This document shows positions 34,271-50,427 of a DNA stretch of 64,000 nt, one piece after another. Made by a program: the position numbers and the translations under genes. Position 1 is the stretch's first letter. Every line of letters begins with the position of its first letter. The notes beneath the pieces are model-generated. The model worked only from the letters and a program-made list of their open reading frames with translations. It was not told the DNA's origin and did no database searches. The stretch is taken from sequence record LR535910.1. The stretch is one strand, 5' to 3'.

Positions 34271-34320
34271 AAATAAAAGGTACCTACCTCCCTTCGGGGA
34301 GGTAGGGCCTTTATTTTCTT
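34271..34320. terminator. Bidirectional terminator closing the minus-strand fibre/radical SAM operon
   Basis: AAATAAAAGG-TA-CCTACCTCCC-TTCG-GGGAGGTAGG-G-CCTTTATTTT. Confidence 0.85.
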
Positions 34321-34323
34321 TGC

Positions 34324-34995
34324 TTACATGCCGAGTGACTCGGACAATGTTTTTAATCCAGTGTAATCGCGCTTTTCAGCTAACTCACGGATTTGGCGTT
34401 TGTTATCTGCCATTGCTGAGTGCAACACTTGGTCACGTGCAACAATAGCGGCCAGCAACGCTTTACATTGGGCTACTGTAAACGGACTGTGCTTAGTATT
34501 CAGCGTATCGAGCCAGTATTCTGGTGCGGTATCTGCCTGAATGTATTGACCGAGGATGGTACGCGACGATTCATCGGCTTGAAAGTGACTACCTTCAAAC
34601 TCGATATAACCATGGCGCTCATCTTCGTAGCGGTGGTCGAGTTCCAACAGCATCTTCTGCACGTCTTCGTAAATGTAACGTGCGGTAGATTTCAGATTCC
34701 CGCGAATTTCGTCGAGGTCAATCTCCAGCACATTAGCAATAAACTCTTTCGTGCGTTTCAATGTGAAGTTAGCTTCAATCTCCGACATCTCATACAGCTT
34801 CATGCGTGCCAGGGCTTCTTTATCAGACATCCCTTCGATGAGATGGTAATGGAGTAATGCACAAAATCCGGTACGGCCCTGATCCTGCGCACCGATTCGT
34901 TCCATGAAATTACCGTGACGATCAATCGGCAAATCACGCTGGAAATAACGGGCGCGGATCTCTTCGTTCGTTAAGCTTTTGTCAGTAACAGACAT
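34324..34995 (-). CDS. DUF4376 domain protein (tail-fibre-assembly type)
   Basis: C-terminal GYIEFEGSHFQADESSR...YWLDTLN...FTVAQCKALLAAI pattern. Confidence 0.65.
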   Translation of the reverse strand: MSVTDKSLTNEEIRARYFQRDLPIDRHGNFMERIGAQDQGRTGFCALLHYHLIEGMSDKEALARMKLYEMSEIEANFTLKRTKEFIANVLEIDLDEIRGNLKSTARYIYEDVQKMLLELDHRYEDERHGYIEFEGSHFQADESSRTILGQYIQADTAPEYWLDTLNTKHSPFTVAQCKALLAAIVARDQVLHSAMADNKRQIRELAEKRDYTGLKTLSESLGM

Positions 34996-35537
34996 TCGTC
35001 CTCCTCAATCAGGCCAAGTTCTAACAACAAACCGAAGTCCAGCATCTGGAAGTCCTGATCGAGGTTACCGGCCCACAACAGAGAAATGTTGTGTTGCTCT
35101 TCTTCTTCCAACTGCGGGAGCAGGTGTTCTTCGAAGATTTGACGCTCTGTGTAATAAGCGTCAACCGGGTTATTGGAGCGTAAGTTACGAATACGCATCC
35201 GCGGGAATGACAAGCCCAACGCCACTAAACTTTCAGGACTGGCTTCATCAATAGAGTGACGTAGCAGTTCGATTTTGTGGCGTGGGTATGCAAGCAGTCG
35301 CTTCTCAAAGCCAGGGTTGCGCTTTTCGATTTCCGCGACAGACTCGTGTCCTTTCTCAACGCAGTAGACCGGGATCATCACATTCAGCCCGTATTTAATC
35401 AACAGGCTTTGGATTTCATCAGTGAAGTCTTCCCCTGCCACAATTGCGTGCACATTGTACAGCTTGCTTTTGCGCAGGAAGCGATCGACCAAGTGCAGTT
35501 TACGCTTCGTAAAATTGTGAATCAGTATTGACTTCAT
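34971..35537 (-). CDS. Unknown protein of the radical SAM cluster, 188 aa (start reassigned)
   Basis: GGAG RBS before the ATG at 35537; overlaps both neighbours. Confidence 0.7.
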   Translation of the reverse strand: MKSILIHNFTKRKLHLVDRFLRKSKLYNVHAIVAGEDFTDEIQSLLIKYGLNVMIPVYCVEKGHESVAEIEKRNPGFEKRLLAYPRHKIELLRHSIDEASPESLVALGLSFPRMRIRNLRSNNPVDAYYTERQIFEEHLLPQLEEEEQHNISLLWAGNLDQDFQMLDFGLLLELGLIEEDECLLLTKA

Positions 35538-36828
35538 TCTGGGCTCCGTTTTGTAATTTTTCTGCTTCAGCACGTTGGCGTACACAACGTGAACAATAGC
35601 ACATGGATTTATCATGCAAATCTGATGCGCGAGTCGTACCAGTTTTCTGATACCAATATTCCGCCGCCATCAGCTTCGCAGTAGTCCAACCACACTGACG
35701 ACGCTCGGCGTGATACGCTTTACGGTCTTCCAGTGTACCTTCACCGTTTTCGTACGATGCTGCTGCGCAGCTACCGCAGCTGTGTTTCATCGGACACCCT
35801 AAACAGGTTTCTGGGTAGTTGGTGTACTGCGTTTGAATCTCTTCTAACAGCTTACCACCGTCCAGGCTCACAAACTCACGACCGACCAGTTCTGCTACAG
35901 CAGAACGGGAAGTTACCGTGGACATGAAACGGTTACAACCGTAAATCTTGCGATCAAAGCCGAGACAGGTCATGTGCGTCAACGTACCGCAGTACGGTTT
36001 CAGGCGTTCTGGGTCGAGACGAACAGAGTCGTCATGTAAGAGTTTGTCACGCCAATCCGGGTCCCAAGTTGCCATAAAGTTCAGGCCATCCGGGATGATG
36101 TGCGTAATCGTGTTACGCGGGTTGGTGTGCAGACCCTTCTCAATCCAGTAGTCCATCACGTCCATCATCTGGTTCGCGATATCCAACGCCATATGGCGCG
36201 GCAGGATATCTTCGTACGTTACGTTACCAGAAATGGTACCACCGCCGGACATGTCAATTAACGATTTCATGCTGGCGGCATAGTGCGGCAATGTATCGAT
36301 CGTAAACGTCGCCTTTACGCCCAGCTCAGCGATGCCAACACTCTTCAGGTAATTGTAACCGCGTACCGCAGCTTCGTACGACCCTTCACGCGTCGTGGTA
36401 AAGATACGATATTTGTCATGGACTTCAGGTAAACCATCGATGGAGACCCCAATAGACAGTTTGTCTTTCCAGCGCTCGATAATTTCTTTGTTCAGCGGAC
36501 GGTCCAGAAGCGTACCGTTCGTGGAGATACTGAACATATACGGGCGATTGTGTTCTGCGCATAACTTCTCTGCGGTTTCAAAGGCCGCCAAAAGAAGTTT
36601 AGGCTGCATGAACGGCTCACCACCGATGATATCGATGATGACTTCAACGTTCGGGATATCTTTATCACGCTCGAAACAAGCGTGGATAAAATCAATCACG
36701 TCTGCTACTTTGTTGTTACGCGGATATTTACGCTCGTAGCAGTATTCGCAGTCCAGGTTACATGACAGGTTAGTCACAACCTGATACGTGCGTGGTGTGT
36801 ACTGGATTTGCTGTTCGCTATTACTCAT
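35500..36828 (-). CDS. Radical SAM enzyme with SPASM-type C-terminal domain (putative peptide maturase)
   Basis: CNLDCEYC (CX3CX2C), GGEP, SISTNGTLL, VSIDG; auxiliary Cys motifs YCGTLTHMTCLGFDRKIYGC and CLGCPMKHSCGSC...QC; extra C-terminal CYCSRC. Confidence 0.9.
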   Translation of the reverse strand: MSNSEQQIQYTPRTYQVVTNLSCNLDCEYCYERKYPRNNKVADVIDFIHACFERDKDIPNVEVIIDIIGGEPFMQPKLLLAAFETAEKLCAEHNRPYMFSISTNGTLLDRPLNKEIIERWKDKLSIGVSIDGLPEVHDKYRIFTTTREGSYEAAVRGYNYLKSVGIAELGVKATFTIDTLPHYAASMKSLIDMSGGGTISGNVTYEDILPRHMALDIANQMMDVMDYWIEKGLHTNPRNTITHIIPDGLNFMATWDPDWRDKLLHDDSVRLDPERLKPYCGTLTHMTCLGFDRKIYGCNRFMSTVTSRSAVAELVGREFVSLDGGKLLEEIQTQYTNYPETCLGCPMKHSCGSCAAASYENGEGTLEDRKAYHAERRQCGWTTAKLMAAEYWYQKTGTTRASDLHDKSMCYCSRCVRQRAEAEKLQNGAQNEVNTDSQFYEA

Positions 36829-37735
36829 TGTTCGCCGCCCGTTTACGCTTAGCAGAAATTACACGGTTGATGTAGTTATACGCATCAACGCCGATAGAAC
36901 GCGCCAGGCGATTACAGCCGACTTCCAATATCTCTGGGGCGTTCTGAATTTGCTCCTGCGTACCGTCGGCGTTAAGCCACAGCACTTCACTGCACGTGTT
37001 GCACTCGGTATCGAACATTTTACTGATTGCAAGCCCACATTCAGAATCGTTCTGCATGTTAAGGCGTTCGATATTGTCGAGTATTTTCCAATACCCGTAC
37101 ATGAAGTTCATGACGTGGTCTGGCGATAACGGTTTCGGCATCATCGCATCAAACAACAACGACACACCACCTGGACGGTAATGATAGATTGCTCGGTGCA
37201 GCTCGATGAAATCTTCGTACCAGCGTTTATCACCTAACTGGTCACGCGTCATCACACCCCAGGTGTAATAGTTGTCCAGCTCGTACAGCACTTCCAGCGC
37301 TTCGTGATTACCACCGTTTACAAAGTTCATAAACGGACGTTCCGACTTCTTGTAGCCGTCAATGGACACAAAGATAAGGTCGAACTGTTTCAGCAACGGC
37401 AGATGTGATTTACGCATCTTTAAACCGTTGGTGTACATGTGATGACGGAGGTTCGGATGAGACTCCTTCAACTCGTTCACGAAGTCTTCAATCTTGCGCT
37501 GCGCTAACAGCGGCTCACCGCCCGTCCAATGAATCTCACCGATATCCGGATTCTTCTCTAAAATCGAGAGAATCTCTTCACGTTGAAACTCACGAGAAGT
37601 ATCTTCTCTATCCATGTAATAAGCCCCTCCACAGAAGCTACAGTCTAAGTTACACTTAGAAGTTGCGACAACCGACAGAATTGACGGTTTGTCGTACAGT
37701 TCAGACGAGATCCTGGATTCTACTTGATCTGTCAT
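36821..37735 (-). CDS. Second radical SAM protein (short auxiliary domain; start reassigned)
   Basis: CNLDCSFC, WTGGEPLL, MYTNG, VSIDG; C-terminal C...CNTC...C; GGAG RBS before the ATG at 37735. Confidence 0.85.
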   Translation of the reverse strand: MTDQVESRISSELYDKPSILSVVATSKCNLDCSFCGGAYYMDREDTSREFQREEILSILEKNPDIGEIHWTGGEPLLAQRKIEDFVNELKESHPNLRHHMYTNGLKMRKSHLPLLKQFDLIFVSIDGYKKSERPFMNFVNGGNHEALEVLYELDNYYTWGVMTRDQLGDKRWYEDFIELHRAIYHYRPGGVSLLFDAMMPKPLSPDHVMNFMYGYWKILDNIERLNMQNDSECGLAISKMFDTECNTCSEVLWLNADGTQEQIQNAPEILEVGCNRLARSIGVDAYNYINRVISAKRKRAANNE

Positions 37736-37757
37736 TGCAGGTTGCTCCAGTATATTT

Positions 37758-38645
37758 TTAAATATAATCAATGGCGAATAAAGGATCTTCGTCTACGTTA
37801 GCGCCAGGCACCAGTAGCATCGGGTCGTGATAGGCAGCTAAAATTTTGTTCAGGTCGGCGTGTCTTTCGTTCAGACGTTTCAAATCGGCCAACGTTACCG
37901 AACGACCACGAATCTCAGAAACAGCTTCTGCTTCTTCTTTCGTTAAATCCACCTTCGTTAAGAGGAAACTTACCAGCTTACTCAAATCCGCTTCCGTCGC
38001 CGGATAATCCCCATATCGGGTTTGAACCAGATGTTGCATCCACGGTTTACGAATACGTTTGGTGATTTCGAAATCGTCAGTCAGTGCATACCAGACAGAA
38101 CGCTTTTTATCCCACACGAACTTATAGCTATACGCCATCATGTCCGCTAAACGGGTGATGCCGAGTTCTTTATACCCCTCGATATCGATGTATGGTTCGG
38201 TGTCGAAATACGTTTCCGTATCGGCAGGTACCAGTACAAAGTAGTAAGGGAACGAGCCCAGATAGTCCGGACTCCACCAACGGCGCGCCATCGGTTTTGC
38301 TTCCAGTTCGTCAAACGGTGTAAACATCAGTTCTAAATCGACGCTGTTGTTCAAAATCCCTTCACTGAAGAAATACTTACCGTCGACTAACACGCCACGA
38401 GAGTTACCATCGCCGTTAAAGATAACGATGGCCTCTGCAACCATATCACGGATCTTAAACGTATTTTCTACGGTGTAGTTCTTCTTGTCGGTCAAGAAGC
38501 GACCACGAACCTTTGGCCACTCACCAGGAATCTGTGCAATCAGTCTGACTTTGTCAGCGAGGTGTGCACGCACTGAATCTGGGGAAGATAGATGCAGCGG
38601 GTGGTTGAATGTGGTTTTATACGCAAGATGCAAATCGTTTTTCAT
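37758..38645 (-). CDS. Unknown protein between the Cys-rich peptides and the radical SAM genes, 295 aa
   Basis: GGAG RBS; co-oriented; no motif recognised. Confidence 0.75.
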   Translation of the reverse strand: MKNDLHLAYKTTFNHPLHLSSPDSVRAHLADKVRLIAQIPGEWPKVRGRFLTDKKNYTVENTFKIRDMVAEAIVIFNGDGNSRGVLVDGKYFFSEGILNNSVDLELMFTPFDELEAKPMARRWWSPDYLGSFPYYFVLVPADTETYFDTEPYIDIEGYKELGITRLADMMAYSYKFVWDKKRSVWYALTDDFEITKRIRKPWMQHLVQTRYGDYPATEADLSKLVSFLLTKVDLTKEEAEAVSEIRGRSVTLADLKRLNERHADLNKILAAYHDPMLLVPGANVDEDPLFAIDYI

Positions 38646-38667
38646 TTAATACTCCGAACGTTTTCTG

Positions 38668-38874
38668 TTATCGATTCCCCGCTCCACGGCTACAGCTTCC
38701 GCTGCAGGACCAGCTACACCCACCATTACAGTTATAGTGAGAAAGCGGTAAGCCAGCCAGGTTATTTGTGGTCGACACGGTGCCCTGGTTAGCGATATAG
38801 TTGTTTGCCTGTGCGGTTGTAATGTAACCTTCTACCGTAACGAGACGGTTTCGAATAGTCTTGAGACTGATCAC
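38668..38874 (-). CDS. Cys-X3 repeat peptide 3 (short core, 4 Cys)
   Basis: Leader MISLKTIRNRLVTVEG, core NCNGGCSWSCSGSCSRG; GGAGG RBS. Confidence 0.8.
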   Translation of the reverse strand: MISLKTIRNRLVTVEGYITTAQANNYIANQGTVSTTNNLAGLPLSHYNCNGGCSWSCSGSCSRGAGNR

Positions 38875-38885
38875 ATAAGCCTCCG

Positions 38886-39287
38886 TCAGTTAGGACCTGA
38901 ACAACCACCAGAACACGCGCCGGAGCAGTTTGCGGAGCAGGATTTGCCACAGCCGCCAGAGCAGTTACCAGTACACGTTCCGCTACAACCACCAGAACAT
39001 GAAGAGCTGCAACCCGTACAGCTGCTGCTACAGCCCGATACACAGTTTGCGGAACAAGTCGACCCACAACCACCCGTAGCAGACCCAGTACACCCGCCAG
39101 AACAACTCGAGCAACTAAAAGAGCATGTGCCACCACAGTCATAGTGCGAACGGCCTTGACCTGCGAACAAGTCGGCGTTATTCGTAGCTTTATTGCGAAT
39201 GTAGTTTTGCACATTCGTGGTGTTCTTTAAAGCGTTTGCATCGATCGTGTTTAATCGGTTATTCAGTTCTTTTAATCCAATTGCCAT
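38886..39287 (-). CDS. Cys-X3 repeat peptide 2 (20 Cys), putative radical SAM substrate
   Basis: Leader MAIGLKELNNRLNTIDA; core DCGGTCSFSC...CSGACSGGCSGPN; GGGGG RBS. Confidence 0.85.
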   Translation of the reverse strand: MAIGLKELNNRLNTIDANALKNTTNVQNYIRNKATNNADLFAGQGRSHYDCGGTCSFSCSSCSGGCTGSATGGCGSTCSANCVSGCSSSCTGCSSSCSGGCSGTCTGNCSGGCGKSCSANCSGACSGGCSGPN

Positions 39288-39297
39288 TTAATCCCCC

Positions 39298-39690
39298 TTA
39301 GCGACCTGAACAGCCGCCGGAGCAGGCCCCGGAGCAGTTTGCGGAACAAGAGCCGCCGCAACCACCTGAACAGTTACCGGTACAGCTACTACTGCAACCA
39401 CCAGAACAACCAGAGCAACCAGAACAGTTACCGCCACACGTCGAAGAACAGCTACCGATACAAGAAGCAGAACAGCTTCCTGAACAGCTCGAACAGCCAT
39501 GCGAGCAACCGTTAGAGCACGTCCAAGAACATGTCCCGCCGCAATCTAGCTGTGCTTTCGTCCAACCCCCAAATCGGTCTGCTGCATTATGGGCTTTAGA
39601 GGCCACTTGCGCCTCGATGCGGGGGCCTGTCGCCATGTTAGCTTCGACTATCTGGACGCGGTTTCTGACGTCTTTAATAGATATCGCCAT
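39298..39690 (-). CDS. Cys-X3 repeat peptide 1 (21 Cys), putative radical SAM substrate
   Basis: Leader MAISIKDVRNRVQIVEA; core DCGGTCSWTC...CSGACSGGCSGR; AAGGA RBS. Confidence 0.85.
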   Translation of the reverse strand: MAISIKDVRNRVQIVEANMATGPRIEAQVASKAHNAADRFGGWTKAQLDCGGTCSWTCSNGCSHGCSSCSGSCSASCIGSCSSTCGGNCSGCSGCSGGCSSSCTGNCSGGCGGSCSANCSGACSGGCSGR

Positions 39691-39755: not shown

Positions 39756-40958
39756 TTACTTAGTACCCGCTTCAGCTTGAACATCGTCGCGCGAGGTGAG
39801 GTTGTTGTTGACGTGAACAGCAGCCTGCACAACACCTCCATACTGTTTATGGAGGTAATTCGGGTGTGGGTTATCCGCAGCCGCATGGTTCGCCAGATTC
39901 TGGTTTGCCTGCGAAATTGCGTTGGTGTTGTTTATAACCTGAGTTTTAAGACTGTTGATTTGTCCTTGCAGGTTATCAATTTGCTGTTGGAAGTCTTTGC
40001 CCTGATTCTCAAGATCCGTGACGCGCTGATTTGTTTCATTCAGTGCAGACTGAAGATCGTTAACCATCTTCTGTAATTGCAACACCAGAGAATTAAGGTT
40101 AGCTAATGCTAACGACATTTTCTGGTAATTTTGAGCAACCACGTTAAGCTGGTCGTTCCACGCGGCTAACGAAGCCACAATTGCATCGATGCGTTGCCCC
40201 AACGCCGTGTCTGCTGCTCTTAAGTCGCCGATATCGTTGATAGTGGCGTCAATGGCAGTCTGTACACTTTGAATCAGGGCACGAATCTCCGTCTCCGTCA
40301 GGCCATTAACCTGATGAATGTCGAGATTGTGTACGTTACCTTCGGCGTTGATGTGGGTATTTAAGGCGTCGAGGAAGTCGTTTCTCAGACCGTCCAGAAT
40401 ACCTTTAATTTCTTCCAGCTGTACTGCAGAGCCGGAGTTAATCGCATCTTTAATCCCCGCGAGTACGGTAATGATATACTCAAAACCGTAGATATCGCCA
40501 AGGTCTTTATACGTCGGGGCGGACGGGAACGTATCGGGTACGTTTCGAAGATCCTTGAAGTCCACCACACGGTCTTCAATTTTCAGCGACGCGATCGCTT
40601 GTCGGATACCTTCGACGTTCGCGGACTGAAAACCACCAACGACTTGCGCAGAGACTTCGATATCAGTAGGAATGGCCGAGTTAGTTACCACCACACCCAT
40701 GACCACTTCGCGGTTCTTGGTCATTTTCTGATATGCAGTATGTGCAAAAATCAGTTCGTAGTCTGTGCCGCGTTTATACGGGTAGACACCTGGTTTATTC
40801 GCAGCTGCCAAGCGGAAGGTATCCGCGTAGAAAGCTCCGTCAGGAAAAGCAAAAGCCCGGTTAACTTTACCAGAACCTAACGTAATACGCCGTGTAACGG
40901 CGTTCGACGTTAATGTCCCGGTAAGGTCGAGCGGGTACTGATGAATGATTTCGGCCAT
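39756..40958 (-). CDS. Short tail fibre or whisker-like protein with long coiled coil (start reassigned)
   Basis: YPLDLTG..SN attachment-type N-terminus shared with the giant fibres; HINAEGNVH and HAAADNPH repeats; heptad coiled coil in the C-terminal third; AGGAG RBS before 40958. Confidence 0.7.
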   Translation of the reverse strand: MAEIIHQYPLDLTGTLTSNAVTRRITLGSGKVNRAFAFPDGAFYADTFRLAAANKPGVYPYKRGTDYELIFAHTAYQKMTKNREVVMGVVVTNSAIPTDIEVSAQVVGGFQSANVEGIRQAIASLKIEDRVVDFKDLRNVPDTFPSAPTYKDLGDIYGFEYIITVLAGIKDAINSGSAVQLEEIKGILDGLRNDFLDALNTHINAEGNVHNLDIHQVNGLTETEIRALIQSVQTAIDATINDIGDLRAADTALGQRIDAIVASLAAWNDQLNVVAQNYQKMSLALANLNSLVLQLQKMVNDLQSALNETNQRVTDLENQGKDFQQQIDNLQGQINSLKTQVINNTNAISQANQNLANHAAADNPHPNYLHKQYGGVVQAAVHVNNNLTSRDDVQAEAGTK

Positions 40959-41005
40959 TGCCAAACTCCTTTGATTGGGGCTTCCTTGCCCCATAGCGCT
41001 ATCTG

Positions 41006-44000
41006 TTAGGTACGGAACATAAGATTGACCTGGATAATATCAGGCTGTTGACGTCCTCTCTCGTTCACCCAATCGTGCGCAATCGTTAACGTAAGATCAT
41101 CGCCATCCCACGCCACGATCGGTGGTGGGAATAAACCCTGAGCGCCCGTGGTAACAACCGGGATTGCACCTGTCACATTCGTAAACGTGTAGCTACGACT
41201 GTTCAGAACAACTGGTGTGCCGTTGGTCTCTCCCGGCTGTGGTAAGATTTGAATCTTACTATCCGAAAGATCGGTGGTGATTGGTAGTCCCCCAGCGTCA
41301 GTGAAAAGCCAAGAGCAAATATGCTGGTTAGCTGTTTCGAGCGCTGAAGAACTTACCGCCGCGACAAATGTAAAGGTGCACGGCACGCCTGCTGGCAGAG
41401 AGTGCTGTTTGTGGTGCACGGTATGTGGTGACGGCAATAACACTTCTGGATTTTCGTCAATGTTAACATCCGTACCTTCCGCCTCGACGTTGTAGAAAAA
41501 GCCATCCACCGCCTCCCATGGGGCAACGTGGACATTAAAGGTCGTTTCTACTCCCGGTGTACCTGGGACGACGAATTTACTTTGCACCACCACCATCAAG
41601 TTCGTTGAGGTCGGTGAGAAAGCGGGCGTTGGAATACCTACCCACTCCATTCCCAACGATGCCGCTTCACCGTTCTCATCAGCCGTTACCGTCGCGATTG
41701 TTGTAGGATGTTTCCAAAACGCCCCCGATTTGTTTGCCTGAGTAAACGCCGGCAAAGTTTTCAAGCCTTCGAAACGTTTGGACACCATCGCTTTACCGCG
41801 ACGCTGTGCGTCAGATACGGTATAAAGCAACTGACTATCCAGATAGCCTTTCGTAGCATCGATCGACAAAGGACCCATCGCTTCTTTACGCAATGGTGCC
41901 AGTCTGCCCGTTGCTGCATCCCTTCCCACTTCCACATCATGCTTATTCTCAACCGCCGCATGTTCCAACAGTTGTTTCACCGCCCCCAATCGCTTAGCAT
42001 GTTCGACGTTAGTCTCGACGACTCGCGACGAGCCCGTTTTAACATACCCGATATAGAGTTCCGTTTCAGTGTCTGGATGTTGAATCACGTCCATTACGTA
42101 CTTCGGTGTACCATTTTCTACCTTGGCGTGCAGGTAGAATGTCCGGTTCTGATGGTTTGTTGGAAATGCTGCGCTGAGGTCAATATACCACGTAGGCAGC
42201 TTATAAGTGCTCGAGCCGAAACGCAGGTCAACTTCCTCAGTCACATATACCAGCCAACCTTCGGCTGTTTCCACACCAGCAATGACGACCGATTCAGTCG
42301 GGCCACTAAAATTAGGAGCCGCGACAAAATCACTCGACGACATTGCGATACCACCACAATAGACGTAGTCGAGAGATGAGTTGTGTAGCATCACCTGATC
42401 ACGATGAGCCAGATAAGCTGGGCTGACTGGAGTGTGGGATGGTGCCATGCGTCCAATGCCGTGTGGAGCAGAAGAACGCGTCCAGGTACCGTTAGACAGC
42501 GTAAGACCAACACCGTAGTTAAGCGCACCCAAGTCGCCAATTTGGCGCAAGGTTAACGTGTGTGGAAGATACAACCCGAACTGAGTACCATCTACTGACA
42601 CCAGTGTAGGTTGTCCCGGCCGGCGTGTTTTTCCTCCCGTTATCTCGCCCAACGTAGCATAGTTCAAGCCGTAGTCGAGGTTGTTATAGAAGTCAAACAG
42701 TGCCAATATCGCTGCGGGGAATGTTACCTGCCCGTTGCTGATCGTTGGTTTCAGTGTAAAGTAGTAGATATCCAACACGTTAACATTGTTCACAGTACGC
42801 ATACATGCTACTTGTGCTAACGTGAGCGGTGTGGCCGTACCAATGCCGATGAACCAAATGGAGAACAGTGCCTTTCCGGCGTTATTTGCGGCAAGGATAA
42901 ATTCCGAAGCATAACCATTCGCAGCGCCAGCCGGTGCACCGTCGATGATCATCTGCTTCATCTTATCCCATTCGGCTTGTGACAGCGTCAACCGATCGGC
43001 ATGAATCGTGAAAGTGCCAGAAACGTTGTGGTAAGGGAATGTTTCTGGTCCTGTGCAATACCAGCCGTTTAACTCTGTACCAGGCGACGCCGGTGTAACA
43101 ATGTGGCACATCTGCGACAGATTCTCGTACGTGGTAGAATCTACTACACGACGATTGTTAGTTGGTCCATACCCCGCTTTACCTGAATAAGTGGTGTTCG
43201 GATCAAACTCAACTTCAATTGCCAAACGGGTACGCGGCTGTGACAACCAGATAAGTCTGGAATTCGCTCCCAGAGTCAGCGGATACGCCATGCCCAGCTC
43301 GTAGATAGAACCACGACCTTGGTTTAACATTACCGCACTAAAACTTCTGGCAGTGAAGTTGTAGTCGCACGACAGGTACTCGTACCAACTCACACCGTCA
43401 TCTAACGTTGTAATCGTGACATAAGGCATTAGGTCGCGATCGCCTGCATGTCCTTGCGAAACGATATACTTGTCTTGCGATGTTGCAAAGGTTCGGTTAT
43501 TAGCTTGACCTTCGCCCCATTTCCGGCTCGGAATCCCAATCTCAGCGCCACCGTTATAACGAACCGTGGTAAGATCGGCCACAATAGGGAATCGATCAGC
43601 ACCTTCCAGCGTTATCGTCATTGAACTACAATCAACAACAAAGCTTGACACCCATTGTTTAAAGTTAATAGTTTGCCCTGTAGTAGAAGCAAACCAAACC
43701 GTTGGAGTTAAACCAACACGAAAGTTCAGCCCATCCACACCAATCGCGTGATTACATTCCGGACCATGGACGAAATTTCGCGCACTATTCCACTTCGCCG
43801 ATGCGTCTGCGTAGATTTGTGTTACTGGCGCTACCAACACATCTGTATCAGAACGTTTCTGACCCTGACGCAAGTAGATATTATCTCCCGACGTTAACAT
43901 CCCACCTGTTAACACATCCGCCACAAACGTGTTGCTACCACCCAGATTAAGTTCGTCGAGTGCGATGCTACGCATACTCACGAAATAGTCACCGGAGGTA

Positions 44001-46189
44001 AGCACAGTACGGAGCAGATAAACCCGCTCGTTGCAAACGATCAAATCGTTTGTTGATGGATCAACAACCCATGGAGCGGTTGTAATCACACCGGCCGCGT
44101 TACCATTTCGGTAATCGCCCAACTGAACTTTAACAACACGATGATGTTTTGCATGGTCAATGGTGCCGTCAAAGATGACCAGGTAGTACGCACCGTCACT
44201 GCCTAAGCAGATCATTGCATCTGTACCGGTAATCACAATAGCAACCAGATTCACCCCAGGATACGCCGACATTCCAGCGGGTCGATAACGTACGGACGTC
44301 TGCTGCATATTTTCCAGCGTATTGCTTGGCGACACATCAGCATAGGCGTAATAGATAGCCCAGTCACCTGGTGGATTCCCGTTAGAACCGTTACGGAGCG
44401 AGTAAACCTTACCAGACTCGTAACGCGCCAAACCTTTCTGCCAGGTTTGGTTTTTGGTATACCCTTCGTAGTTCCCCTGGACTGGTATAGGCAAGAAGTT
44501 ATTGTTGCCGTACGATGATCCGCCGACAGTCCACGCCGGTAATAACGTACCAATCTTGTCATTCAGTGTGTCAATCTTTTGTTCAAGCAAGAAGCCCTGA
44601 CGCGAAGTGACCATCTTATCCGAGGTAGTGTCGATTGCATCCCACAGTTTAGCCAAACCTGTAACAGACGTGGATGCGTACGGCACGTTATCGAGATCTG
44701 CAATGGTGTGGGTGTGCGTTGTAAGCGCTTTGCCTGATAGCACGGTACGCAATGCGTTAGTAACTGGCTTTTCTAACGGTCCGGTATTGTCCATTTTCTC
44801 AATACCGAAATCTGCCGCGGTTAAGGTCAGATGCATCTGCCCGTTTGCGTCTAACACAAACCCTTTACCATTGACCGTATACGTGTCGTCCACATATCCG
44901 TCGAGTTTGTTCTTCAAGTCAGTAACAGCTTTTTGGGAAATCGCTGTGGACGCTGCAGCGGATGCCGAGAGGTTAGTAATCGCAAACAAACCCTGCACAG
45001 TTGTGGTTGCTGCAGGCAGCTCCGCATTCATGTAAACTTTGTTTGTTTCTTTACCAGAGCCGTAAATCTTCAACGTGTCGCTGGACTTGAAGTAGGCGTT
45101 TGCTGGAAGTATCTTCACCGAGGTCAAGTACATCTTAACCATATCCGGTGTAACGAGATACACGCTGTTATACACAGGTGCAAGCACACCTGCATCATAA
45201 GCGCCCCACTTGTCACCTGCTTTACCCGAGTGAACCCAAAGCGTGTTCAGACCAGCACTGAACTCCGTAGCGATACCCGGTTCGTTGTTATCCTGGTCAG
45301 CTTTTAATACCAGCGGTTTTGTCGAGGTGATAATGAACTTCTCACCTTTCATGCTGATAACGTGACCGGACGTTGTTTGGAATGTAATTGCGTCGTTATT
45401 CAGAACACGCATACGGCCCAGTAAATCACCCAGGGTATTATCCAGAAGCATGTCAACATGTTTCTGTTGGATACCGCTGGTAGACATTAGCGTCACTAAC
45501 TCTGCCAGTGTACGTCCAAACGCTTTAGTCGCATCCACGGCCTTACCGAGCACAGGGAGTGCGCCAATGTCACCGCAGGTGTAACCATGTGCATTTTTAA
45601 TCAGGTGGTGTTGATACATTTCGTCATCAAACACCTGTTTACCGTTCTGATAAATCAAATCGGTAACTTCGGCAAATGCCTCATCTAGTTCGTGGGCGCG
45701 CTCTAAAATACCCAGACGGATATCTTCCAACGCCTTTACGATTTCATCGCGAAGAATCGCTTCTTCGAGATCTTTTGGCGGGTCGATTGGCGAAATAATC
45801 GGCGGATATTTCATCAGCTCAGACCAATCGCAGTTGCGCGGGTCTTTCATATCCGTCTTAACCAGATACTTGCCGATTTCAGAAGCAGGGATGCGATACT
45901 GTCGACCAACCGACAACAACTCGTATTCTACCTCTGTGGCGTTCAGCAGCATTATGCTGCCGTATATTGCATCGTTCTCAGCCTCGGCTAATTCCTGGAA
46001 GTAATGTCCTAAGAAATAATCAAGACCTTCTATTAACTTACGTTTGGTTCCGGTTGTTTTATCGGTAACTGTTAACGTTAACCCGATGCGATAGAACGGT
46101 GCTTCGACGGGAATGACCGTCGAATAACGGTTCGGGTAAGTAGCGGTACTGAGGGTACCGTTAAACTGCGCCGCATCTTCTCTCGGCAT
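41006..46189 (-). CDS. Giant tail fibre protein, about 1727 aa (start reassigned)
   Basis: AGGAG RBS before 46189; APFY...G.DY N-terminus; ATTTVQGL and ASTSVTGLAKL fibre repeats; NPH-like motifs; beta-rich distal domains. Confidence 0.75.
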   Translation of the reverse strand: MPREDAAQFNGTLSTATYPNRYSTVIPVEAPFYRIGLTLTVTDKTTGTKRKLIEGLDYFLGHYFQELAEAENDAIYGSIMLLNATEVEYELLSVGRQYRIPASEIGKYLVKTDMKDPRNCDWSELMKYPPIISPIDPPKDLEEAILRDEIVKALEDIRLGILERAHELDEAFAEVTDLIYQNGKQVFDDEMYQHHLIKNAHGYTCGDIGALPVLGKAVDATKAFGRTLAELVTLMSTSGIQQKHVDMLLDNTLGDLLGRMRVLNNDAITFQTTSGHVISMKGEKFIITSTKPLVLKADQDNNEPGIATEFSAGLNTLWVHSGKAGDKWGAYDAGVLAPVYNSVYLVTPDMVKMYLTSVKILPANAYFKSSDTLKIYGSGKETNKVYMNAELPAATTTVQGLFAITNLSASAAASTAISQKAVTDLKNKLDGYVDDTYTVNGKGFVLDANGQMHLTLTAADFGIEKMDNTGPLEKPVTNALRTVLSGKALTTHTHTIADLDNVPYASTSVTGLAKLWDAIDTTSDKMVTSRQGFLLEQKIDTLNDKIGTLLPAWTVGGSSYGNNNFLPIPVQGNYEGYTKNQTWQKGLARYESGKVYSLRNGSNGNPPGDWAIYYAYADVSPSNTLENMQQTSVRYRPAGMSAYPGVNLVAIVITGTDAMICLGSDGAYYLVIFDGTIDHAKHHRVVKVQLGDYRNGNAAGVITTAPWVVDPSTNDLIVCNERVYLLRTVLTSGDYFVSMRSIALDELNLGGSNTFVADVLTGGMLTSGDNIYLRQGQKRSDTDVLVAPVTQIYADASAKWNSARNFVHGPECNHAIGVDGLNFRVGLTPTVWFASTTGQTINFKQWVSSFVVDCSSMTITLEGADRFPIVADLTTVRYNGGAEIGIPSRKWGEGQANNRTFATSQDKYIVSQGHAGDRDLMPYVTITTLDDGVSWYEYLSCDYNFTARSFSAVMLNQGRGSIYELGMAYPLTLGANSRLIWLSQPRTRLAIEVEFDPNTTYSGKAGYGPTNNRRVVDSTTYENLSQMCHIVTPASPGTELNGWYCTGPETFPYHNVSGTFTIHADRLTLSQAEWDKMKQMIIDGAPAGAANGYASEFILAANNAGKALFSIWFIGIGTATPLTLAQVACMRTVNNVNVLDIYYFTLKPTISNGQVTFPAAILALFDFYNNLDYGLNYATLGEITGGKTRRPGQPTLVSVDGTQFGLYLPHTLTLRQIGDLGALNYGVGLTLSNGTWTRSSAPHGIGRMAPSHTPVSPAYLAHRDQVMLHNSSLDYVYCGGIAMSSSDFVAAPNFSGPTESVVIAGVETAEGWLVYVTEEVDLRFGSSTYKLPTWYIDLSAAFPTNHQNRTFYLHAKVENGTPKYVMDVIQHPDTETELYIGYVKTGSSRVVETNVEHAKRLGAVKQLLEHAAVENKHDVEVGRDAATGRLAPLRKEAMGPLSIDATKGYLDSQLLYTVSDAQRRGKAMVSKRFEGLKTLPAFTQANKSGAFWKHPTTIATVTADENGEAASLGMEWVGIPTPAFSPTSTNLMVVVQSKFVVPGTPGVETTFNVHVAPWEAVDGFFYNVEAEGTDVNIDENPEVLLPSPHTVHHKQHSLPAGVPCTFTFVAAVSSSALETANQHICSWLFTDAGGLPITTDLSDSKIQILPQPGETNGTPVVLNSRSYTFTNVTGAIPVVTTGAQGLFPPPIVAWDGDDLTLTIAHDWVNERGRQQPDIIQVNLMFRT

Positions 46190-46221
46190 TGCAAACACTC
46201 CTAATCTGTAATAAAACGGAG

Positions 46222-46275
46222 ACCGCCCTCCCAATAACGGAAGGGCGGTTTACCTACGGACTACCCGCCCGTAGG
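46222..46275 (-). terminator. Tandem hairpins between two fibre genes (terminator or processing site)
   Basis: ACCGCCCT...AGGGCGGT and CCTACGG...CCGTAGG stems; TTTTATT follows on the minus strand. Confidence 0.5.
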
Positions 46276-46284
46276 CAGTCCGTC

Positions 46285-49200
46285 CTAAGAGGCCCACTCA
46301 CCCGAGTTGTTGCCTTCGTTTCTACGTTCAGTATCCAACGTTTGTAAAATCCAATCCCATGTCCTGGTGGGGATGTGGAATGGATTACGCTTCTCAATGA
46401 GAATCGTCTCGCCACCCGTGCGAAGTTCCACCGGTGTCGTTTCAGTAATCACGAACATCGGATTACCACTACTACCCACACCATTAATAGTGAACTTCGC
46501 TTGCAGCGGCGGCACAGAACCTTCCGGAGGCACGAACACGATGTGAATTGGCTGCATCGGTTTCGTGCGGGCAAGAATCCCAGATATCTGAACAGCTGTT
46601 GTCGATGCACTGAAAGGTATAACATTACCCGGAATTTTCTCACTACCCACGATGATATATCCAGGGTAGTTAGAGAGCATTGTCCCATTTACCGACACAA
46701 AACGCTCATTTTGAGTTGGGCGATAAGCCCGCATAAAGCCGTACTTCCATTCACCACCGTTAGACGTATAGTCTGCAGGAGCCGACTCAAGTAGCGGAGC
46801 ACCACGTTTCTGCAGCCCTTTGTAAAACGGCGCGGGGAGTTTACCGTTCGGTGCAAGTTCCGGATAACCCTCACTTGCAGCAGACATCGTGATGTATTCC
46901 GTAACCGGGTTATCGACGTTATCTCCAAAGTTCGCGAACTCGACGGTTGATATCGACATCTCCTCATGCCCAGAAGACTGGCTGTCCGGAGAACGCTCAA
47001 TATACGACTCAAATAGCGAGCGTAGATAATGGAAACGATTTAAATCTACTTCTGTTGTGGAAGGGTCCATCAAACCGTGGTTGATTGTGACGCCTTCACC
47101 AGTTTCGATGCCAGTAACACCAATCGATAAAGCGCCGCCTTTAAAATAATCAATCGCGTCAAACGGAAGGTCGTATTCTATCTCACGAATAGTTGCCGAA
47201 GCCTGGCCGCCTATCTTACTAATCGACGATATTCGCAGTATCTGCGTATCAACAATATAGCGATAACGAATAAGCCAGCGCGAACCAATGGCTGCGAACT
47301 CGCTAGCGATTGAAACCGGGAGATAGTCTAAACAGTCGGGCGACTGAACATCCACGCTCTTGATTACACGAGGAGCATCAACCAGCGTATTAGTAACGCT
47401 GGATTGTGTGGTGGCAATTCTTCCGGTTGGTTTATCGTACGGCGCAGCAATAAAGCCGCAGTTTAAACTGGTGTGGGAGTTACTCCACCGCAGGACTCTG
47501 GTTTTACCTTTCCCATCAGCAGAAGGGGCCATGAAGTTTAATGAAACTTCGACGTCCGAGGTTTTTGGGACTTCAGGATAATCAGTGTCGATTACCACCG
47601 AACCCTCGAATGTCGCCATTCCATTTTCTTTCGGGTTGCTTGGTGTAAACCAGCAATACGGGGACGCGTTTTCAGTGGAAACAACCGCCGCAAGAAGAAT
47701 CCTGAGCGAGGTGGCACTTACGAATTTATAATCAAATAACCCACGATCTAAACGAACGAGGTTATCCCCAGAAACAGACGGGTTAGTTGGATACGCATAC
47801 AGCCATTGTTTAGGTAATGGATCAACCTTATTCAACGGCAGCATTTTCGGGTTATCCGTCAACGACCAGTCGGTGTTACTCACCCCGTGTGCTAGACGTG
47901 TTTCGAAGTGCCGTTTAAGTTCGGACGCCATGCCGAAGTCAAACGTCGTTTCAAACTCGTAAGTCGTGCCTGCAACCAATCCCGCGTCAGGGACATCGAT
48001 GTGGCCGATATAGCCGCGTTCCAAGTTAATACCTTCCGTGTCCACAATAGGTTCGGCGCGCGAATATAACGCATCGGTTATCATGTTCACATAGAGGTAA
48101 TGCCTTAAACCGTTCGGCGTCTTAACAAACTCCTGCAGGCGGGCAACTTTGGTGTTTTTATCCGAGGCCCCAACCGCAAAGTCACCGTCGTAAATTGTGA
48201 AACGAATTGCGGCTGCTTTAGCGCTATCGTTACATTCTGCACGGAATGCTAAGCAGTGTTGCTTCCACCCCTCCTTGACAGTCGCCTCCAGATACCCCGC
48301 TTCTGTAATACCCGCACCGATTATTTCGCCGTCCAGATAAACAGAAACAGCACCACCGCCACGAACCCAAATCCGCAGCTTACCAGAGTCGCAACGAACC
48401 CACGTTTTCGCCAAGAGGTTAACGACCGACAAATCACCCATTCCAGTTGTCGTTAAACCAATCTGCGCACCGTAGTCCGTTTCCGGGACAGCAACCTCAA
48501 ACCCACTAAAATCAATACCGGCACCGGTATTAATTACCGCGTTCTGCCACGTTCTTTCCATACGGTTATCTGGAGAGAACCACTGGAACATCGGTGTGGT
48601 TTGCAGGTCTATCGAACCAGATACCGTCCCCTCTTTACGTGCACCATTTAACAGATAGAAATAATTCAAATCCGTTACGGCGAGGGTGGTACGTGTAGAT
48701 CCCACAGTCCAAGTCTTACCACGCACAGCGGCAAAATCGGTCACGGAATCCTCTTTCGCGTTTGCTAGCGCAGCTGCAACTACGTCTAAACGTTTTGACA
48801 GATCGTTCAGAACGTTCGGGGTAACGCCGCGATTATCCGACAAGCCGTTTAGGTTGGTAGAATATCGAGCGATACCGGGAACTGTTTGAGAAGCCGTTGG
48901 GATCTGTAAATCGGCGAAGTTGTGATGGTGACCTTTATCACTAAGACCGGTAACTGCTTCTGCCAACGCATCAGAAAGTGGTTTATCGACGTCAGCTGTG
49001 TTATCAGCCAAGTCCAGACCCAAATCCTTTTTCGTTAGCGTTCGGCTACCAGTGTCCATCGGCTGGTTATTCAGCAGCGTTGTCTTCCGGACGTACGAAG
49101 ACAGATCACCCTCGTACGGTAAGAGCGAAGCTGGGGTGACTGCTTGTCCCTTGACTACATCGCTCGGCTTATCAGTCAGCGTCACAACGCCGGGTTCAGA

Positions 49201-50415
49201 GGTCGTCGCGGGTTTGGCTGTGACCTTCCCGGTGACGGGATCGGCTTTTGACCCTTTACCCGTGAAAGTAATGCCGTTCACCCCGCTAATGTACAGTTTG
49301 TTGTCATCCGGGTCAACGGTACCACCGCCGGTACCAGGGTCTTGTTGATAGCCCATGAGAGCAGTTGTGGTCAGTAACGTCGTACCATTAAGCGTCAGCT
49401 TATCCATCCCCAAGGCACTGCCAGTCGACTCAATACGTAATGTATTGATGCCTGCTTTCCACTCCATAAACCGGGTGGTTCCAGTAGTGTCGGCATACCC
49501 ACACGCCAACACAACAGAGCCATTAGATTTAAGAGTGAATGCCTCAGCAGAGAACACAATTTCGGATTCACCAGCAGGAGAACGGAACAGGGCACGAGTA
49601 CCGGATATCGTCGCATTAAACACCCCTTTGGATTCCTTCGATACCCATTTAGAAATGTACTTGTCGATATCCGATTGTTGCAGACCCAGTGCACGGACCT
49701 CGCTGGTTAACTGACGCAACGTCTTTCCATACGCCAGGAAAGTATCTGGCGTTTTTAGGTTGACAGGATGCGCACCGGCCTGCGCCGCGGTAGTCCCATG
49801 AGGGTTAGTCGACGCAATGTGTCCGGGGTAGTTAAATGTGGCGATTTCAGTTCCTAAGCCCAAAACCGCATCTTTCAGCTCAGTAAGCTTTTCACGAATC
49901 TGCTCGTTGGCCGCCCCGGCATCTAACTCCACATCATGCACTGCAGAGGCAACATACTTTTTATTCAGCATGTCTGACCAAGCTACCGCTGCAGGGGTGG
50001 CTGGGTAAAGGGAAGGTCGATTACCTAAAAGCAGCCAATCTGCAGCCGTTGGGTTGTTGAGAGCCTTAATTAGCTCATCCAACATCTCAATCAAACCACT
50101 GTAAAACGTACCCCCGAGCATCTGGCCTTCAAAGACCACCGCACCACGCAGTTTAGGGTTAATAAGATGCACCCCGCAAAACACCGGGGTCGTCACCGAG
50201 TCGTCCAACGGTGTTAAAGCATACTCCAGCTCATAGTCCGTCCCGCGGGTAAGCGGTATGGACGAGCCGGCGAGCCTTACCACCAATCCTTCGAAAAACG
50301 GGCGATGATCTAGCATCACCACCCGATCGTTAGGATTGTCGGAGTCGATGATACGTTCCTCGATGAAGTGACACTCAGGATTTACACCCCGAGGATCGTA
50401 AGGATACGTTTTCAT
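46285..50415 (-). CDS. Giant tail fibre protein, 1376 aa
   Basis: YPYDPRG N-terminus, PFF...GTDY, HIASTNPHGTT, ATTSEPGVVTL, LGLDLADNTADVDKPLS fibre repeats. Confidence 0.75.
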   Translation of the reverse strand: MKTYPYDPRGVNPECHFIEERIIDSDNPNDRVVMLDHRPFFEGLVVRLAGSSIPLTRGTDYELEYALTPLDDSVTTPVFCGVHLINPKLRGAVVFEGQMLGGTFYSGLIEMLDELIKALNNPTAADWLLLGNRPSLYPATPAAVAWSDMLNKKYVASAVHDVELDAGAANEQIREKLTELKDAVLGLGTEIATFNYPGHIASTNPHGTTAAQAGAHPVNLKTPDTFLAYGKTLRQLTSEVRALGLQQSDIDKYISKWVSKESKGVFNATISGTRALFRSPAGESEIVFSAEAFTLKSNGSVVLACGYADTTGTTRFMEWKAGINTLRIESTGSALGMDKLTLNGTTLLTTTALMGYQQDPGTGGGTVDPDDNKLYISGVNGITFTGKGSKADPVTGKVTAKPATTSEPGVVTLTDKPSDVVKGQAVTPASLLPYEGDLSSYVRKTTLLNNQPMDTGSRTLTKKDLGLDLADNTADVDKPLSDALAEAVTGLSDKGHHHNFADLQIPTASQTVPGIARYSTNLNGLSDNRGVTPNVLNDLSKRLDVVAAALANAKEDSVTDFAAVRGKTWTVGSTRTTLAVTDLNYFYLLNGARKEGTVSGSIDLQTTPMFQWFSPDNRMERTWQNAVINTGAGIDFSGFEVAVPETDYGAQIGLTTTGMGDLSVVNLLAKTWVRCDSGKLRIWVRGGGAVSVYLDGEIIGAGITEAGYLEATVKEGWKQHCLAFRAECNDSAKAAAIRFTIYDGDFAVGASDKNTKVARLQEFVKTPNGLRHYLYVNMITDALYSRAEPIVDTEGINLERGYIGHIDVPDAGLVAGTTYEFETTFDFGMASELKRHFETRLAHGVSNTDWSLTDNPKMLPLNKVDPLPKQWLYAYPTNPSVSGDNLVRLDRGLFDYKFVSATSLRILLAAVVSTENASPYCWFTPSNPKENGMATFEGSVVIDTDYPEVPKTSDVEVSLNFMAPSADGKGKTRVLRWSNSHTSLNCGFIAAPYDKPTGRIATTQSSVTNTLVDAPRVIKSVDVQSPDCLDYLPVSIASEFAAIGSRWLIRYRYIVDTQILRISSISKIGGQASATIREIEYDLPFDAIDYFKGGALSIGVTGIETGEGVTINHGLMDPSTTEVDLNRFHYLRSLFESYIERSPDSQSSGHEEMSISTVEFANFGDNVDNPVTEYITMSAASEGYPELAPNGKLPAPFYKGLQKRGAPLLESAPADYTSNGGEWKYGFMRAYRPTQNERFVSVNGTMLSNYPGYIIVGSEKIPGNVIPFSASTTAVQISGILARTKPMQPIHIVFVPPEGSVPPLQAKFTINGVGSSGNPMFVITETTPVELRTGGETILIEKRNPFHIPTRTWDWILQTLDTERRNEGNNSGEWAS

Positions 50416-50427
50416 TCAAAAATCTCC

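Follow-up and report, generated by a model that had tools for sequence, protein, structure and literature searches.

The gene block and its surroundings

The DNA analysed here (the window) is a stretch of 64,000 nucleotides from sequence record LR535910.1, and the system in question is a block of eight tightly packed minus-strand genes at positions 34324-39690, equivalent to genes 0161-0166 of the jumbo phage SPN3US, in which three Cys-repeat peptides (A, B and C) are encoded together with two radical S-adenosylmethionine (SAM) enzymes. The region matches Salmonella phage SPFM4 and several more of the SPFM isolates with 100% identity, and SPN3US (genus Seoulvirus) with 98%; judged by its sequence, the source of the window is an SPN3US-like jumbo phage. 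The original prediction, made from the letters of the window, had described seven genes, one fewer than are counted. The remaining points of its layout were found in place on the minus strand, namely co-oriented and packed genes that follow four fibre genes and end at one terminator. The features are listed below, the block itself first and the neighbouring genes after it.

39298..39690, minus strand: Cys-repeat protein A, 130 residues with 21 Cys (phrog_6085, E 7e-40; Shine-Dalgarno sequence AAGGAAG)
38886..39287, minus strand: Cys-repeat protein B, 133 residues with 20 Cys, a paralogue of A (phrog_6085, E 1.8e-41)
38668..38874, minus strand: short paralogue C, 68 residues with 4 Cys, GTG start (phrog_6085, E 2.8e-25)
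37758..38645, minus strand: accessory protein of 295 residues, SPN3US gp165 (phrog_8030)
36821..37735, minus strand: small radical SAM enzyme (gp164), 304 residues from ATG (PF04055, E 1.1e-15)
35500..36828, minus strand: radical SAM/SPASM enzyme (gp163), 442 residues (PF04055; seven invariant C-terminal Cys)
34971..35537, minus strand: protein of 188 residues (gp162), function not assigned (phrog_7988, aligned from residue 27 of the longer open reading frame)
34324..34995, minus strand: DUF4376 protein (gp161), 223 residues (PF14301, E 1.4e-9; phrog_2837 tail protein, E 8e-4)
34283..34306, no single strand: bidirectional intrinsic terminator (stem of 10 bp, 7 of them GC, and T runs on either strand)
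39756..40994, minus strand: gp167-like virion protein, directly upstream of the peptide genes (phrog_2163 virion structural protein, E 3.7e-109)
41006..46234, minus strand: gp168-like large virion fibre/baseplate protein (open reading frame from TTG; the annotated SPN3US start is 15 codons later)
46285..50415, minus strand: gp169-like large virion fibre/baseplate protein (open reading frame of 1376 residues; virion mass spectrometry of the counterpart)
50428..54141, minus strand: gp170-like large virion protein of paralogue family C, a baseplate/tail-fibre candidate (open reading frame of 1237 residues; first of the co-oriented block)

In the order of transcription, from A to the DUF4376 gene, the gaps between the genes are 10, 11, 22, 22, -8, -38 and -25 nt, and 65 nt separate the gp167-like gene from peptide A. 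A Shine-Dalgarno sequence precedes each of the eight genes (in gp162 one is also found before M27). The terminator closes both the minus-strand block and a converging plus-strand gene. Profile searches of the operon with NCBIfam, Pfam and PHROG returned no protease, transporter or immunity gene, which agrees with what had been noted from the letters alone. The earlier assignment of gp161 to DUF4376 (PF14301), a family that occurs in phage tail loci, also holds, with 38.8 bits against a threshold of 25. Neither Pfam nor a PDB sequence search gave a match for gp162, the PDB sequence searches with gp161 and gp165 were likewise without match, and the one with gp167 returned coiled-coil noise only.

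The four co-oriented genes upstream of the peptides (39756-54141) are the counterparts of SPN3US gp167-gp170. All four proteins were detected in purified SPN3US virions, gp167 in abundance (SC/M 1.90), and gp168-gp170 were named as baseplate/tail-fibre candidates (PMC5694885, PMC5105663). The gp168 protein was likened to gp131 of phiKZ, located at the baseplate periphery (PMC5105663).

Two minor features of these neighbours can be added. The gp167-like protein has a long C-terminal coiled coil and ends with a fibre-type His-Pro-x-Tyr motif, and in SPN3US no virion protein outside the head, sheath and tube assignments is more abundant than its counterpart. The three large fibre proteins (gp168-gp170) are paralogous and the Cys peptides are also three in number, and the two sets might pair up.

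Cys-repeat peptides and radical SAM enzymes

In peptide A the N-terminal 49 residues form a fibre-like stub and the remaining 81 the ladder, which holds the 21 Cys. Peptide C consists of the N-terminal stub of A and B and the first Cys knot only. The Cys content is 26% in the cores and 0.9% in the other long open reading frames of the window, and the spacing from one Cys to the next is 4 in 17 of the 20 intervals of A and in 16 of the 19 intervals of B. This pattern is not due to chance. The A/B/C trio is present in all 18 related jumbo-phage loci (IMG/VR; identity of the radical SAM enzyme to that of the window 63-100%), with 21 Cys in every A, 20-23 in B and 2-4 in C. Across 19 distinct sequences per peptide, the Cys columns of the ladder are invariant save for a few gapped or substituted ones, and the residue at the X positions varies between Ser, Gly, Thr, Ala and Asn. 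The Pfam search with the three peptides gave no match, and their scores with the TIGR04114 model are 18.4 (A), 16.4 and 13.7 bits against a cut-off of 20. A, B and C are regarded as real genes in the Cys frame.

The SPN3US annotation presents the region differently. The only open reading frame annotated over the peptides (JN641803 and NC_027402) is SPN3US_0166 (JN641803 18562-18897, corresponding to 38886-39221 of the window); its translation is an Ala/Val-rich alternative frame over peptide B, and no annotation exists there for peptides A and C. For SPN3US_0164 (JN641803 16498-17292, 36821-37615 of the window), the start given in the annotation falls after the CX3CX2C motif. In two jumbo-phage contigs with 83% radical SAM identity, an additional gp164-like gene is located between A and B (L086 6542-7453; L101 6543-7454).

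Both enzymes score above the radical SAM superfamily cut-off (PF04055, 29.5 bits), with 55.6 bits for gp163 and 58.7 bits for gp164, and the CX3CX2C and GGEP motifs are invariant in the homologue alignments of both. In gp163 the CX3CX2C motif occupies residues 23-30, and seven SPASM-type Cys residues (C280, C298, C342, C345, C351, C354 and C379) are invariant in 18 sequences with identity down to 32%. By this seven-Cys C-terminal motif, which in SPASM enzymes serves two auxiliary 4Fe-4S clusters, gp163 is classified as a SPASM enzyme; the Pfam SPASM model does not match it, and the alignment with NF047865 (PapB) reaches residue 357. The invariant residues of gp164 are C28, C32, C35, GGEP, C245 and C274; it has no SPASM domain, and its NCBIfam matches are weak and scattered. 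The pair of enzymes, one of them SPASM-type, is thus as first described.

The top NCBIfam match of gp163 is TIGR04115 (E 3e-36, 125.6 bits against a cut-off of 350), followed by PapB (NF047865; E 1.1e-32, 113.6 bits against 340). Relatives of gp163 score 125-157 bits with TIGR04115, and the true members found at L006, L011, L105 and L119 score 389-565. PapB is the best family match for the relatives from Deferribacter and L104. Since the scores lie far below both cut-offs, the paired enzymes are a sister family of TIGR04115 and PapB, as judged from profile comparisons, and not members of either. The link to TIGR04114/TIGR04115 suggested in the original prediction is therefore retained as a nearest family and dropped as a membership. 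Assignment to PapB was also rejected, for the score and for the lack of an acidic residue at fixed offset in the substrates, as was assignment to the HxsB/HxsC families (75.1 against 370 bits and 45 against 267.9 bits; no HXS repeats in the peptides). No operon protein matches the TIGR04119 maturase domain at E <= 0.1, a domain that is present in L006. The closest solved structure to gp163 is that of the thioether-forming CteB (5wgg, E 3e-10). Because the alignment starts at residue 106 of CteB, which falls on residue 22 of gp163, the latter has no N-terminal recognition domain.

Several characterised or modelled systems resemble the one described here, each in part. The CXXX-repeat system of Haft (target TIGR04114/PF27846, maturase TIGR04115, and TIGR04119) likewise places a substrate with a Cys at every fourth residue beside a SPASM radical SAM enzyme, whereas the phage system has a second, non-SPASM enzyme and a gp165-like protein and lacks TIGR04119; no function or chemistry for the TIGR04115 system was found in the literature searched. 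PapB (freyrasin) and CteB (thermocellin) are SPASM enzymes that link Cys to carbon by thioethers within short repeated motifs, but the PapB substrates carry Cys-X3-Asp/Glu, a motif without counterpart in the ladders, and the products of both are small secreted peptides rather than fibre-type domains. The SPASM enzyme QhpD installs intramolecular Cys thioethers in the Cys-rich QhpC, which stays a structural subunit. Its model (TIGR03906) matches gp163 with E 3.8e-15, a distant homology, and QhpC differs in having Asp/Glu acceptors, no repeat ladder and no phage context. The His-Xaa-Ser system also combines a SPASM (HxsB) and a non-SPASM (HxsC) enzyme on a peptide with short-period repeats, and its models match gp163 (4.8e-21) and gp164 (6e-12), both far below the cut-offs; HxsA and the His-Xaa-Ser repeats are absent here. 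Among fibre maturation devices, the Peptidase_S74 chaperones, the Tfa/gp38-type proteins and the metal-stapled tips of T4 are likewise encoded after the fibres and act on the distal C-terminus, but they fold or trim the fibre without enzymatic covalent crosslinking.

Related loci outside the SPN3US-like clade

Among deposited phage genomes, 62 of the 64 matching records belong to the SPN3US/PhiEaH2/CR5-like clade, whose hosts are Salmonella, Escherichia, Proteus, Erwinia and Cronobacter. Judged by these records, the module is specific to one clade among jumbo phages. The protein search with gp163 returned a graded series in phage contigs of ~240 kb down to 47% identity, and, below that, a distinct group at 32-39%. 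When genome and metagenome contigs were scanned with the radical SAM alignment, most matches were generic SPASM enzymes (<=30% identity); two non-jumbo relatives were added (L127 and L128), whose contigs both end upstream and whose Cys-repeat genes were left out of the counts.

Eight loci outside the clade were read (L003, L004, L005, L103, L104, L116, L117 and L118), and they include prophages of lambda-like type, a P2-like phage and a further jumbo phage. In all eight, the gp163 relative (32-47% identity) is accompanied by a small radical SAM enzyme and by a product ending in the Cys repeat. At five of them the repeat forms the C-terminus of a fibre-like protein of 257-568 residues, encoded near gpJ or baseplate genes. 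In the genome of Deferribacter abyssi (L003) the order is gpK (NlpC/P60), gpJ, two small genes, a 302-residue protein, a gp165-like gene, the small radical SAM gene and the SPASM gene. The 302-residue protein has a fibre-like N-terminus and shaft-like HxH...RYYTE repeats, and its last ~100 residues are a ladder with 29 Cys. The same type of arrangement is seen in Desulfoluna butyratoxydans (L005) and in L116, where fibre-like proteins of 257 and 258 residues, with HxH...RYYTE shaft repeats, are encoded three genes downstream of gpK (NlpC/P60)-gpJ, and where three radical SAM genes are present each. A 213-kb viral contig (L103) carries a Cys-tipped protein of 568 residues two genes past a baseplate-wedge gene, and a 33-kb viral contig (L104) carries P2-type baseplate and tail-fibre genes followed by a 401-residue Cys-tipped protein with weak tail-fibre matches.

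The other loci are arranged in different ways. At L004 the module is preceded by three genes for fibre or fibre-like proteins, two of them of the Peptidase_S74 type, and consists, in this order, of the SPASM enzyme, a gp162-like protein, a 129-residue peptide with 21 Cys, a 60-residue short paralogue, a gp165-like protein, the small radical SAM enzyme and a gp167-like protein. The ladder of L118 ends a coiled-coil protein of 271 residues. L117 encodes a 110-residue Cys-repeat protein, and a DUF4376 gene follows its radical SAM pair. No transporter or peptidase was found beside the module at any of the eight loci. Two unrelated features were observed nearby: at L117 (4269-6537, a 104-kb phage contig) two S-adenosylmethionine lyase genes are located a few kb upstream of the two radical SAM genes, so that genes for destroying and for using SAM are oddly combined, and at L118 (16957-18312, a 140-kb contig) an IS605 OrfB/TnpB (Cas12f-like) gene is found beside the tail genes.

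The likeness between the peptides and the fused fibres extends beyond the ladder. The alignment of the profile phrog_6085 with the fused fibres starts at profile positions 8-23, so the homology reaches 25-40 residues upstream of the first Cys. At the shared junction, a fibre-type Asn-Ala-x-x-Leu-x-Gly segment precedes the first two Cys, and these are followed by an invariant Ser-Trp. Because the homology runs this far into the supposed leader, the N-terminal ~50 residues of the peptides are best described as a vestigial segment of fibre shaft and not as a disposable leader; of the "leader plus core" peptides in the original prediction, the three Cys-rich peptides stand and the leader does not. 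The Ser-Trp after the second Cys was considered as a site for the second enzyme and set aside, because L117 and L118 retain two radical SAM enzymes without this motif.

Genes for gp165-like proteins adjoin the radical SAM pair in seven of the eight loci (L003, L004, L005, L104, L116, L117 and L118). The AlphaFold2 model of gp165 (predicted local distance difference score, pLDDT, 90; predicted template modelling score 0.85) shows a curved beta-sheet and a helical bundle. The gp162-like genes are found only in the jumbo-phage type and at L004, and DUF4376 genes in some of the other loci. From this gene content, the core of the system is the Cys-tipped protein, the gp165-like protein, the small radical SAM enzyme and the SPASM radical SAM enzyme.

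The true TIGR04115 loci form a different type, with one radical SAM enzyme, sometimes fused to TIGR04119, with other accessory genes and without a gp165-like gene; no gp165 counterpart was found in the Firmicute TIGR04115 prophage loci. The search with peptide A returned proteins of 200-226 residues bearing the CXXX target repeat (PF27846), one of which (P0171) occurs on 128 contigs. At the two sites shown (L119 and L120) the P0171 gene lies after a large gene and beside two small genes, a true TIGR04115 enzyme gene, a holin gene and then an endolysin gene, the last two either directly adjacent or separated by one short gene on the opposite strand. The large gene encodes a collagen-like tail fibre of 1373 residues at L119 and an 892-residue protein without matches at L120. 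L119 is a Firmicute prophage tail module, in which the genes for tape measure, Dit, Tal and fibre come before P0171 (226 residues), which ends the series; the adjacent TIGR04115 enzyme (389 bits) lies between the tail fibre and the lysis genes. In the IMG/VR viral contig L105, a TIGR04115 enzyme (416 bits) is accompanied by weak tail-fibre matches upstream and by Cys-rich frames of 165 and 104 codons. Since the TIGR04115 enzymes and the Cys-repeat products have these settings at L119 and L105, the classical CXXX branch is, from its gene context, also used in prophage tail modules.

A putative crosslinked fibre tip and its alternatives

In general, the Cys-repeat proteins are probably, though by no means securely, miniature tail-fibre components with a ladder tip crosslinked by the radical SAM enzymes. 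The parts of this reading are not equally firm. That the peptides are real substrates of the enzymes is highly likely, enzyme and peptide being found together at the eight readable loci outside the clade and at the 18 jumbo-phage loci. Their place among the fibre or virion components is likely on grounds of homology: they are encoded in a tail-fibre module and are homologous to fibre proteins, both of which would be expected of a fibre-tip protein. For the links to be thioethers, by analogy with the nearest enzymes, the chances appear evenly balanced. The earlier claim of a structural part made by the chemistry of ribosomally synthesised and post-translationally modified peptides (RiPPs), and not a secreted antibiotic, is supported by the tail-fibre position of the paired-enzyme core and by the fibre fusion in five of the eight loci. 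The gene order of the relatives points the same way, as a tail context accompanies six of the eight loci outside the clade, L117 and L118 being less clear.

In this proposal only a stub, with a helix predicted at its N-terminus, is left of the fibre shaft in the jumbo phages, where the genes have also undergone triplication. The ladder would be modified late in infection, in the reducing cytoplasm, by gp163 and gp164. The likeliest reaction would be the abstraction of hydrogen and the joining of Cys sulfur to a carbon of neighbouring residues, giving thioether rings similar to those of ranthipeptides, sactipeptides or the QhpC subunit; this chemistry is favoured because the nearest enzyme families make sulfur-to-carbon thioethers. 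The product may be a stack of small covalent rings, forming a rigid, redox-insensitive and protease-resistant tip. Because gp165 accompanies two enzymes without a recognition domain, it may bind the substrate, or hold and present it to the pair, which is a guess, as its fold matches nothing. The gp162 and DUF4376 proteins might help to mount the product on the gp167-gp170 fibre/baseplate complex.

Phage fibres assemble in the reducing cytoplasm, where disulfides cannot form, and the proposed modification would be a crosslink that can be made there. Work on radical SAM peptide maturases has dealt with their part in making antibiotics and cofactors, and the maturation of receptor-binding fibres is thought to consist of folding chaperones, autoproteolysis and metal binding; the two fields would be joined by the present system, and the ladder would be the first known case of a virion protein that depends on radical SAM enzymes. 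A full-text literature search returned no paper in which a radical SAM enzyme acts on a virion or tail-fibre protein, its coverage being incomplete and the result an absence of evidence, and no description of the Cys peptides of SPN3US-like phages or of the paired-enzyme system was found in the literature searched (coverage again incomplete). If correct, the proposal would also account for the two radical SAM genes in the SPN3US-like clade of enterobacterial jumbo phages and would give a function to a bioinformatically defined Cys-repeat class without known role. Radical SAM enzymes are sensitive to oxygen, so the redox state of the host could affect what the fibre is composed of. A wider version is put forward tentatively, with somewhat less than even expectation: that radical SAM "RiPP" chemistry is a general route of tailed phages (lambda-like, P2-like, Firmicute siphovirus and jumbo) to crosslinked Cys-ladder fibre tips, and that a substantial share of the CXXX/TIGR04115 class serves virion maturation.

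Several observations weigh against a crosslinked fibre tip. The tail context at L117 and L118, two of the eight loci, is the less clear one mentioned above. The X positions of the ladder are mostly Ser, Gly and Thr, and no PapB-type Asp/Glu acceptor is found. The AlphaFold2 model of peptide A (9-row alignment, pLDDT 43) contains an N-terminal helix only, the ladder being without a confident fold, and the Foldseek search of the PDB with the gp165 model gave no fold match (best E 0.4). Cys-repeat peptides with Tat/Sec-like signal peptides are encoded beside true TIGR04115 enzymes (L006 2039-2404, L015 1422-2251, L130 2199-2507 and L131 3-239) in Planctomycete and metagenome contigs without phage context, so the repeat is not tied to fibres; it appears to be a general extracytoplasmic module adopted by phages, or the reverse. 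Finally, the SPN3US virion proteome comprises 86 proteins and includes gp167-gp173 but none of gp161-gp166 (PMC5694885, PMC5105663).

The last observation also speaks for the likeliest of the alternatives, in which the peptides are assembly factors only, i.e. a transient scaffold, cap or chaperone for the gp167-gp170 fibres, missing from the finished virion. The proteins not detected include the properly annotated gp161, gp162, gp163 and gp165, and a DUF4376 gene and accessory genes are co-located with the peptides. It is also common for tail-fibre chaperones to be encoded directly after fibre genes. For the peptides themselves the proteome is uninformative, because the annotated gp166 is in the wrong frame and A and C are unannotated; the absence of gp166 was accordingly dropped as evidence against a structural role once it was clear that gp166 as annotated is read in a different frame. 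The annotation error has kept the peptides out of the proteomic searches, and existing mass-spectrometry data can address the question, as digestion of the stubs with trypsin is predicted to give ordinary peptides 8-13 residues long. The repeat is, moreover, the C-terminal part of a fibre polypeptide in the relatives, although it could be cleaved off in the manner of the Peptidase_S74 intramolecular chaperones. Altogether, a role confined to assembly is considered unlikely.

A classical RiPP carried as a phage accessory, with a true leader cut by a host protease and a core freed at lysis as a bacteriocin-like or signalling peptide, is less probable still. Short Cys-rich open reading frames beside a SPASM enzyme most closely related to peptide maturases would suit such a product, and non-phage CXXX systems with short signal-peptide-bearing peptides do exist. 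The operon, however, has no protease, exporter or immunity gene, and the position inside tail-fibre modules is fixed across four tail types. The homology of the "leader" to fibre, the repeat being part of a fibre-like protein of 257-568 residues in five relatives, is at odds with a leader that is cut away, and a nearly coreless paralogue such as C, kept in 18 of 18 jumbo-phage loci, is odd for a precursor.

At a similarly low level we place the possibility that the ladder is a metal- or iron-sulfur-binding module, the radical SAM enzymes carrying out epimerisation, oxidation of Cys/Ser to formylglycine or another C-H functionalisation. A ladder with 26% Cys and small residues in between is compatible with metal binding, anaerobic sulfatase-maturase models and structures are among the enzyme matches, and the ladder offers no Asp/Glu acceptor with a constant offset. 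Metal sites do occur in phage fibres, e.g. the HxH iron sites of T4 gp37. Against this, thioether formation is the activity of the top-scoring families and of the closest enzyme of solved structure, and the peptides are without a sulfatase motif.

That the Ala/Val-rich alternative frame (SPN3US gp166) is the real gene and the Cys frame is not can be practically dismissed: the frame is open (open reading frames of 141 and 70 residues) and annotated in JN641803 and NC_027402, but the Cys frame has the Shine-Dalgarno sites, the starts and three paralogues with a common N-terminus, its Cys columns are invariant in 19 distinct sequences per peptide, it is homologous to fibre C-termini in unrelated phages, and open frames are expected in GC-rich, codon-repetitive DNA.

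Two minor observations concern reading frames and records of this region. Open reading frames of 70-223 residues, in alternative frames or on the opposite strand, are found at 38789-39214, 39288-39500 and 41708-42379, inside the peptide and gp168-like genes, and are probably not genes but a side effect of repetitive, GC-rich codons. The records LR535903, LR535908, LR535911 and LR535913 (SPFM5, 10, 12 and 15) align as at least 40 short pieces with ~99% identity and are the source of scrambled protein entries (P0081-84 and P0141-157); these four look like error-rich assemblies rather than biology.

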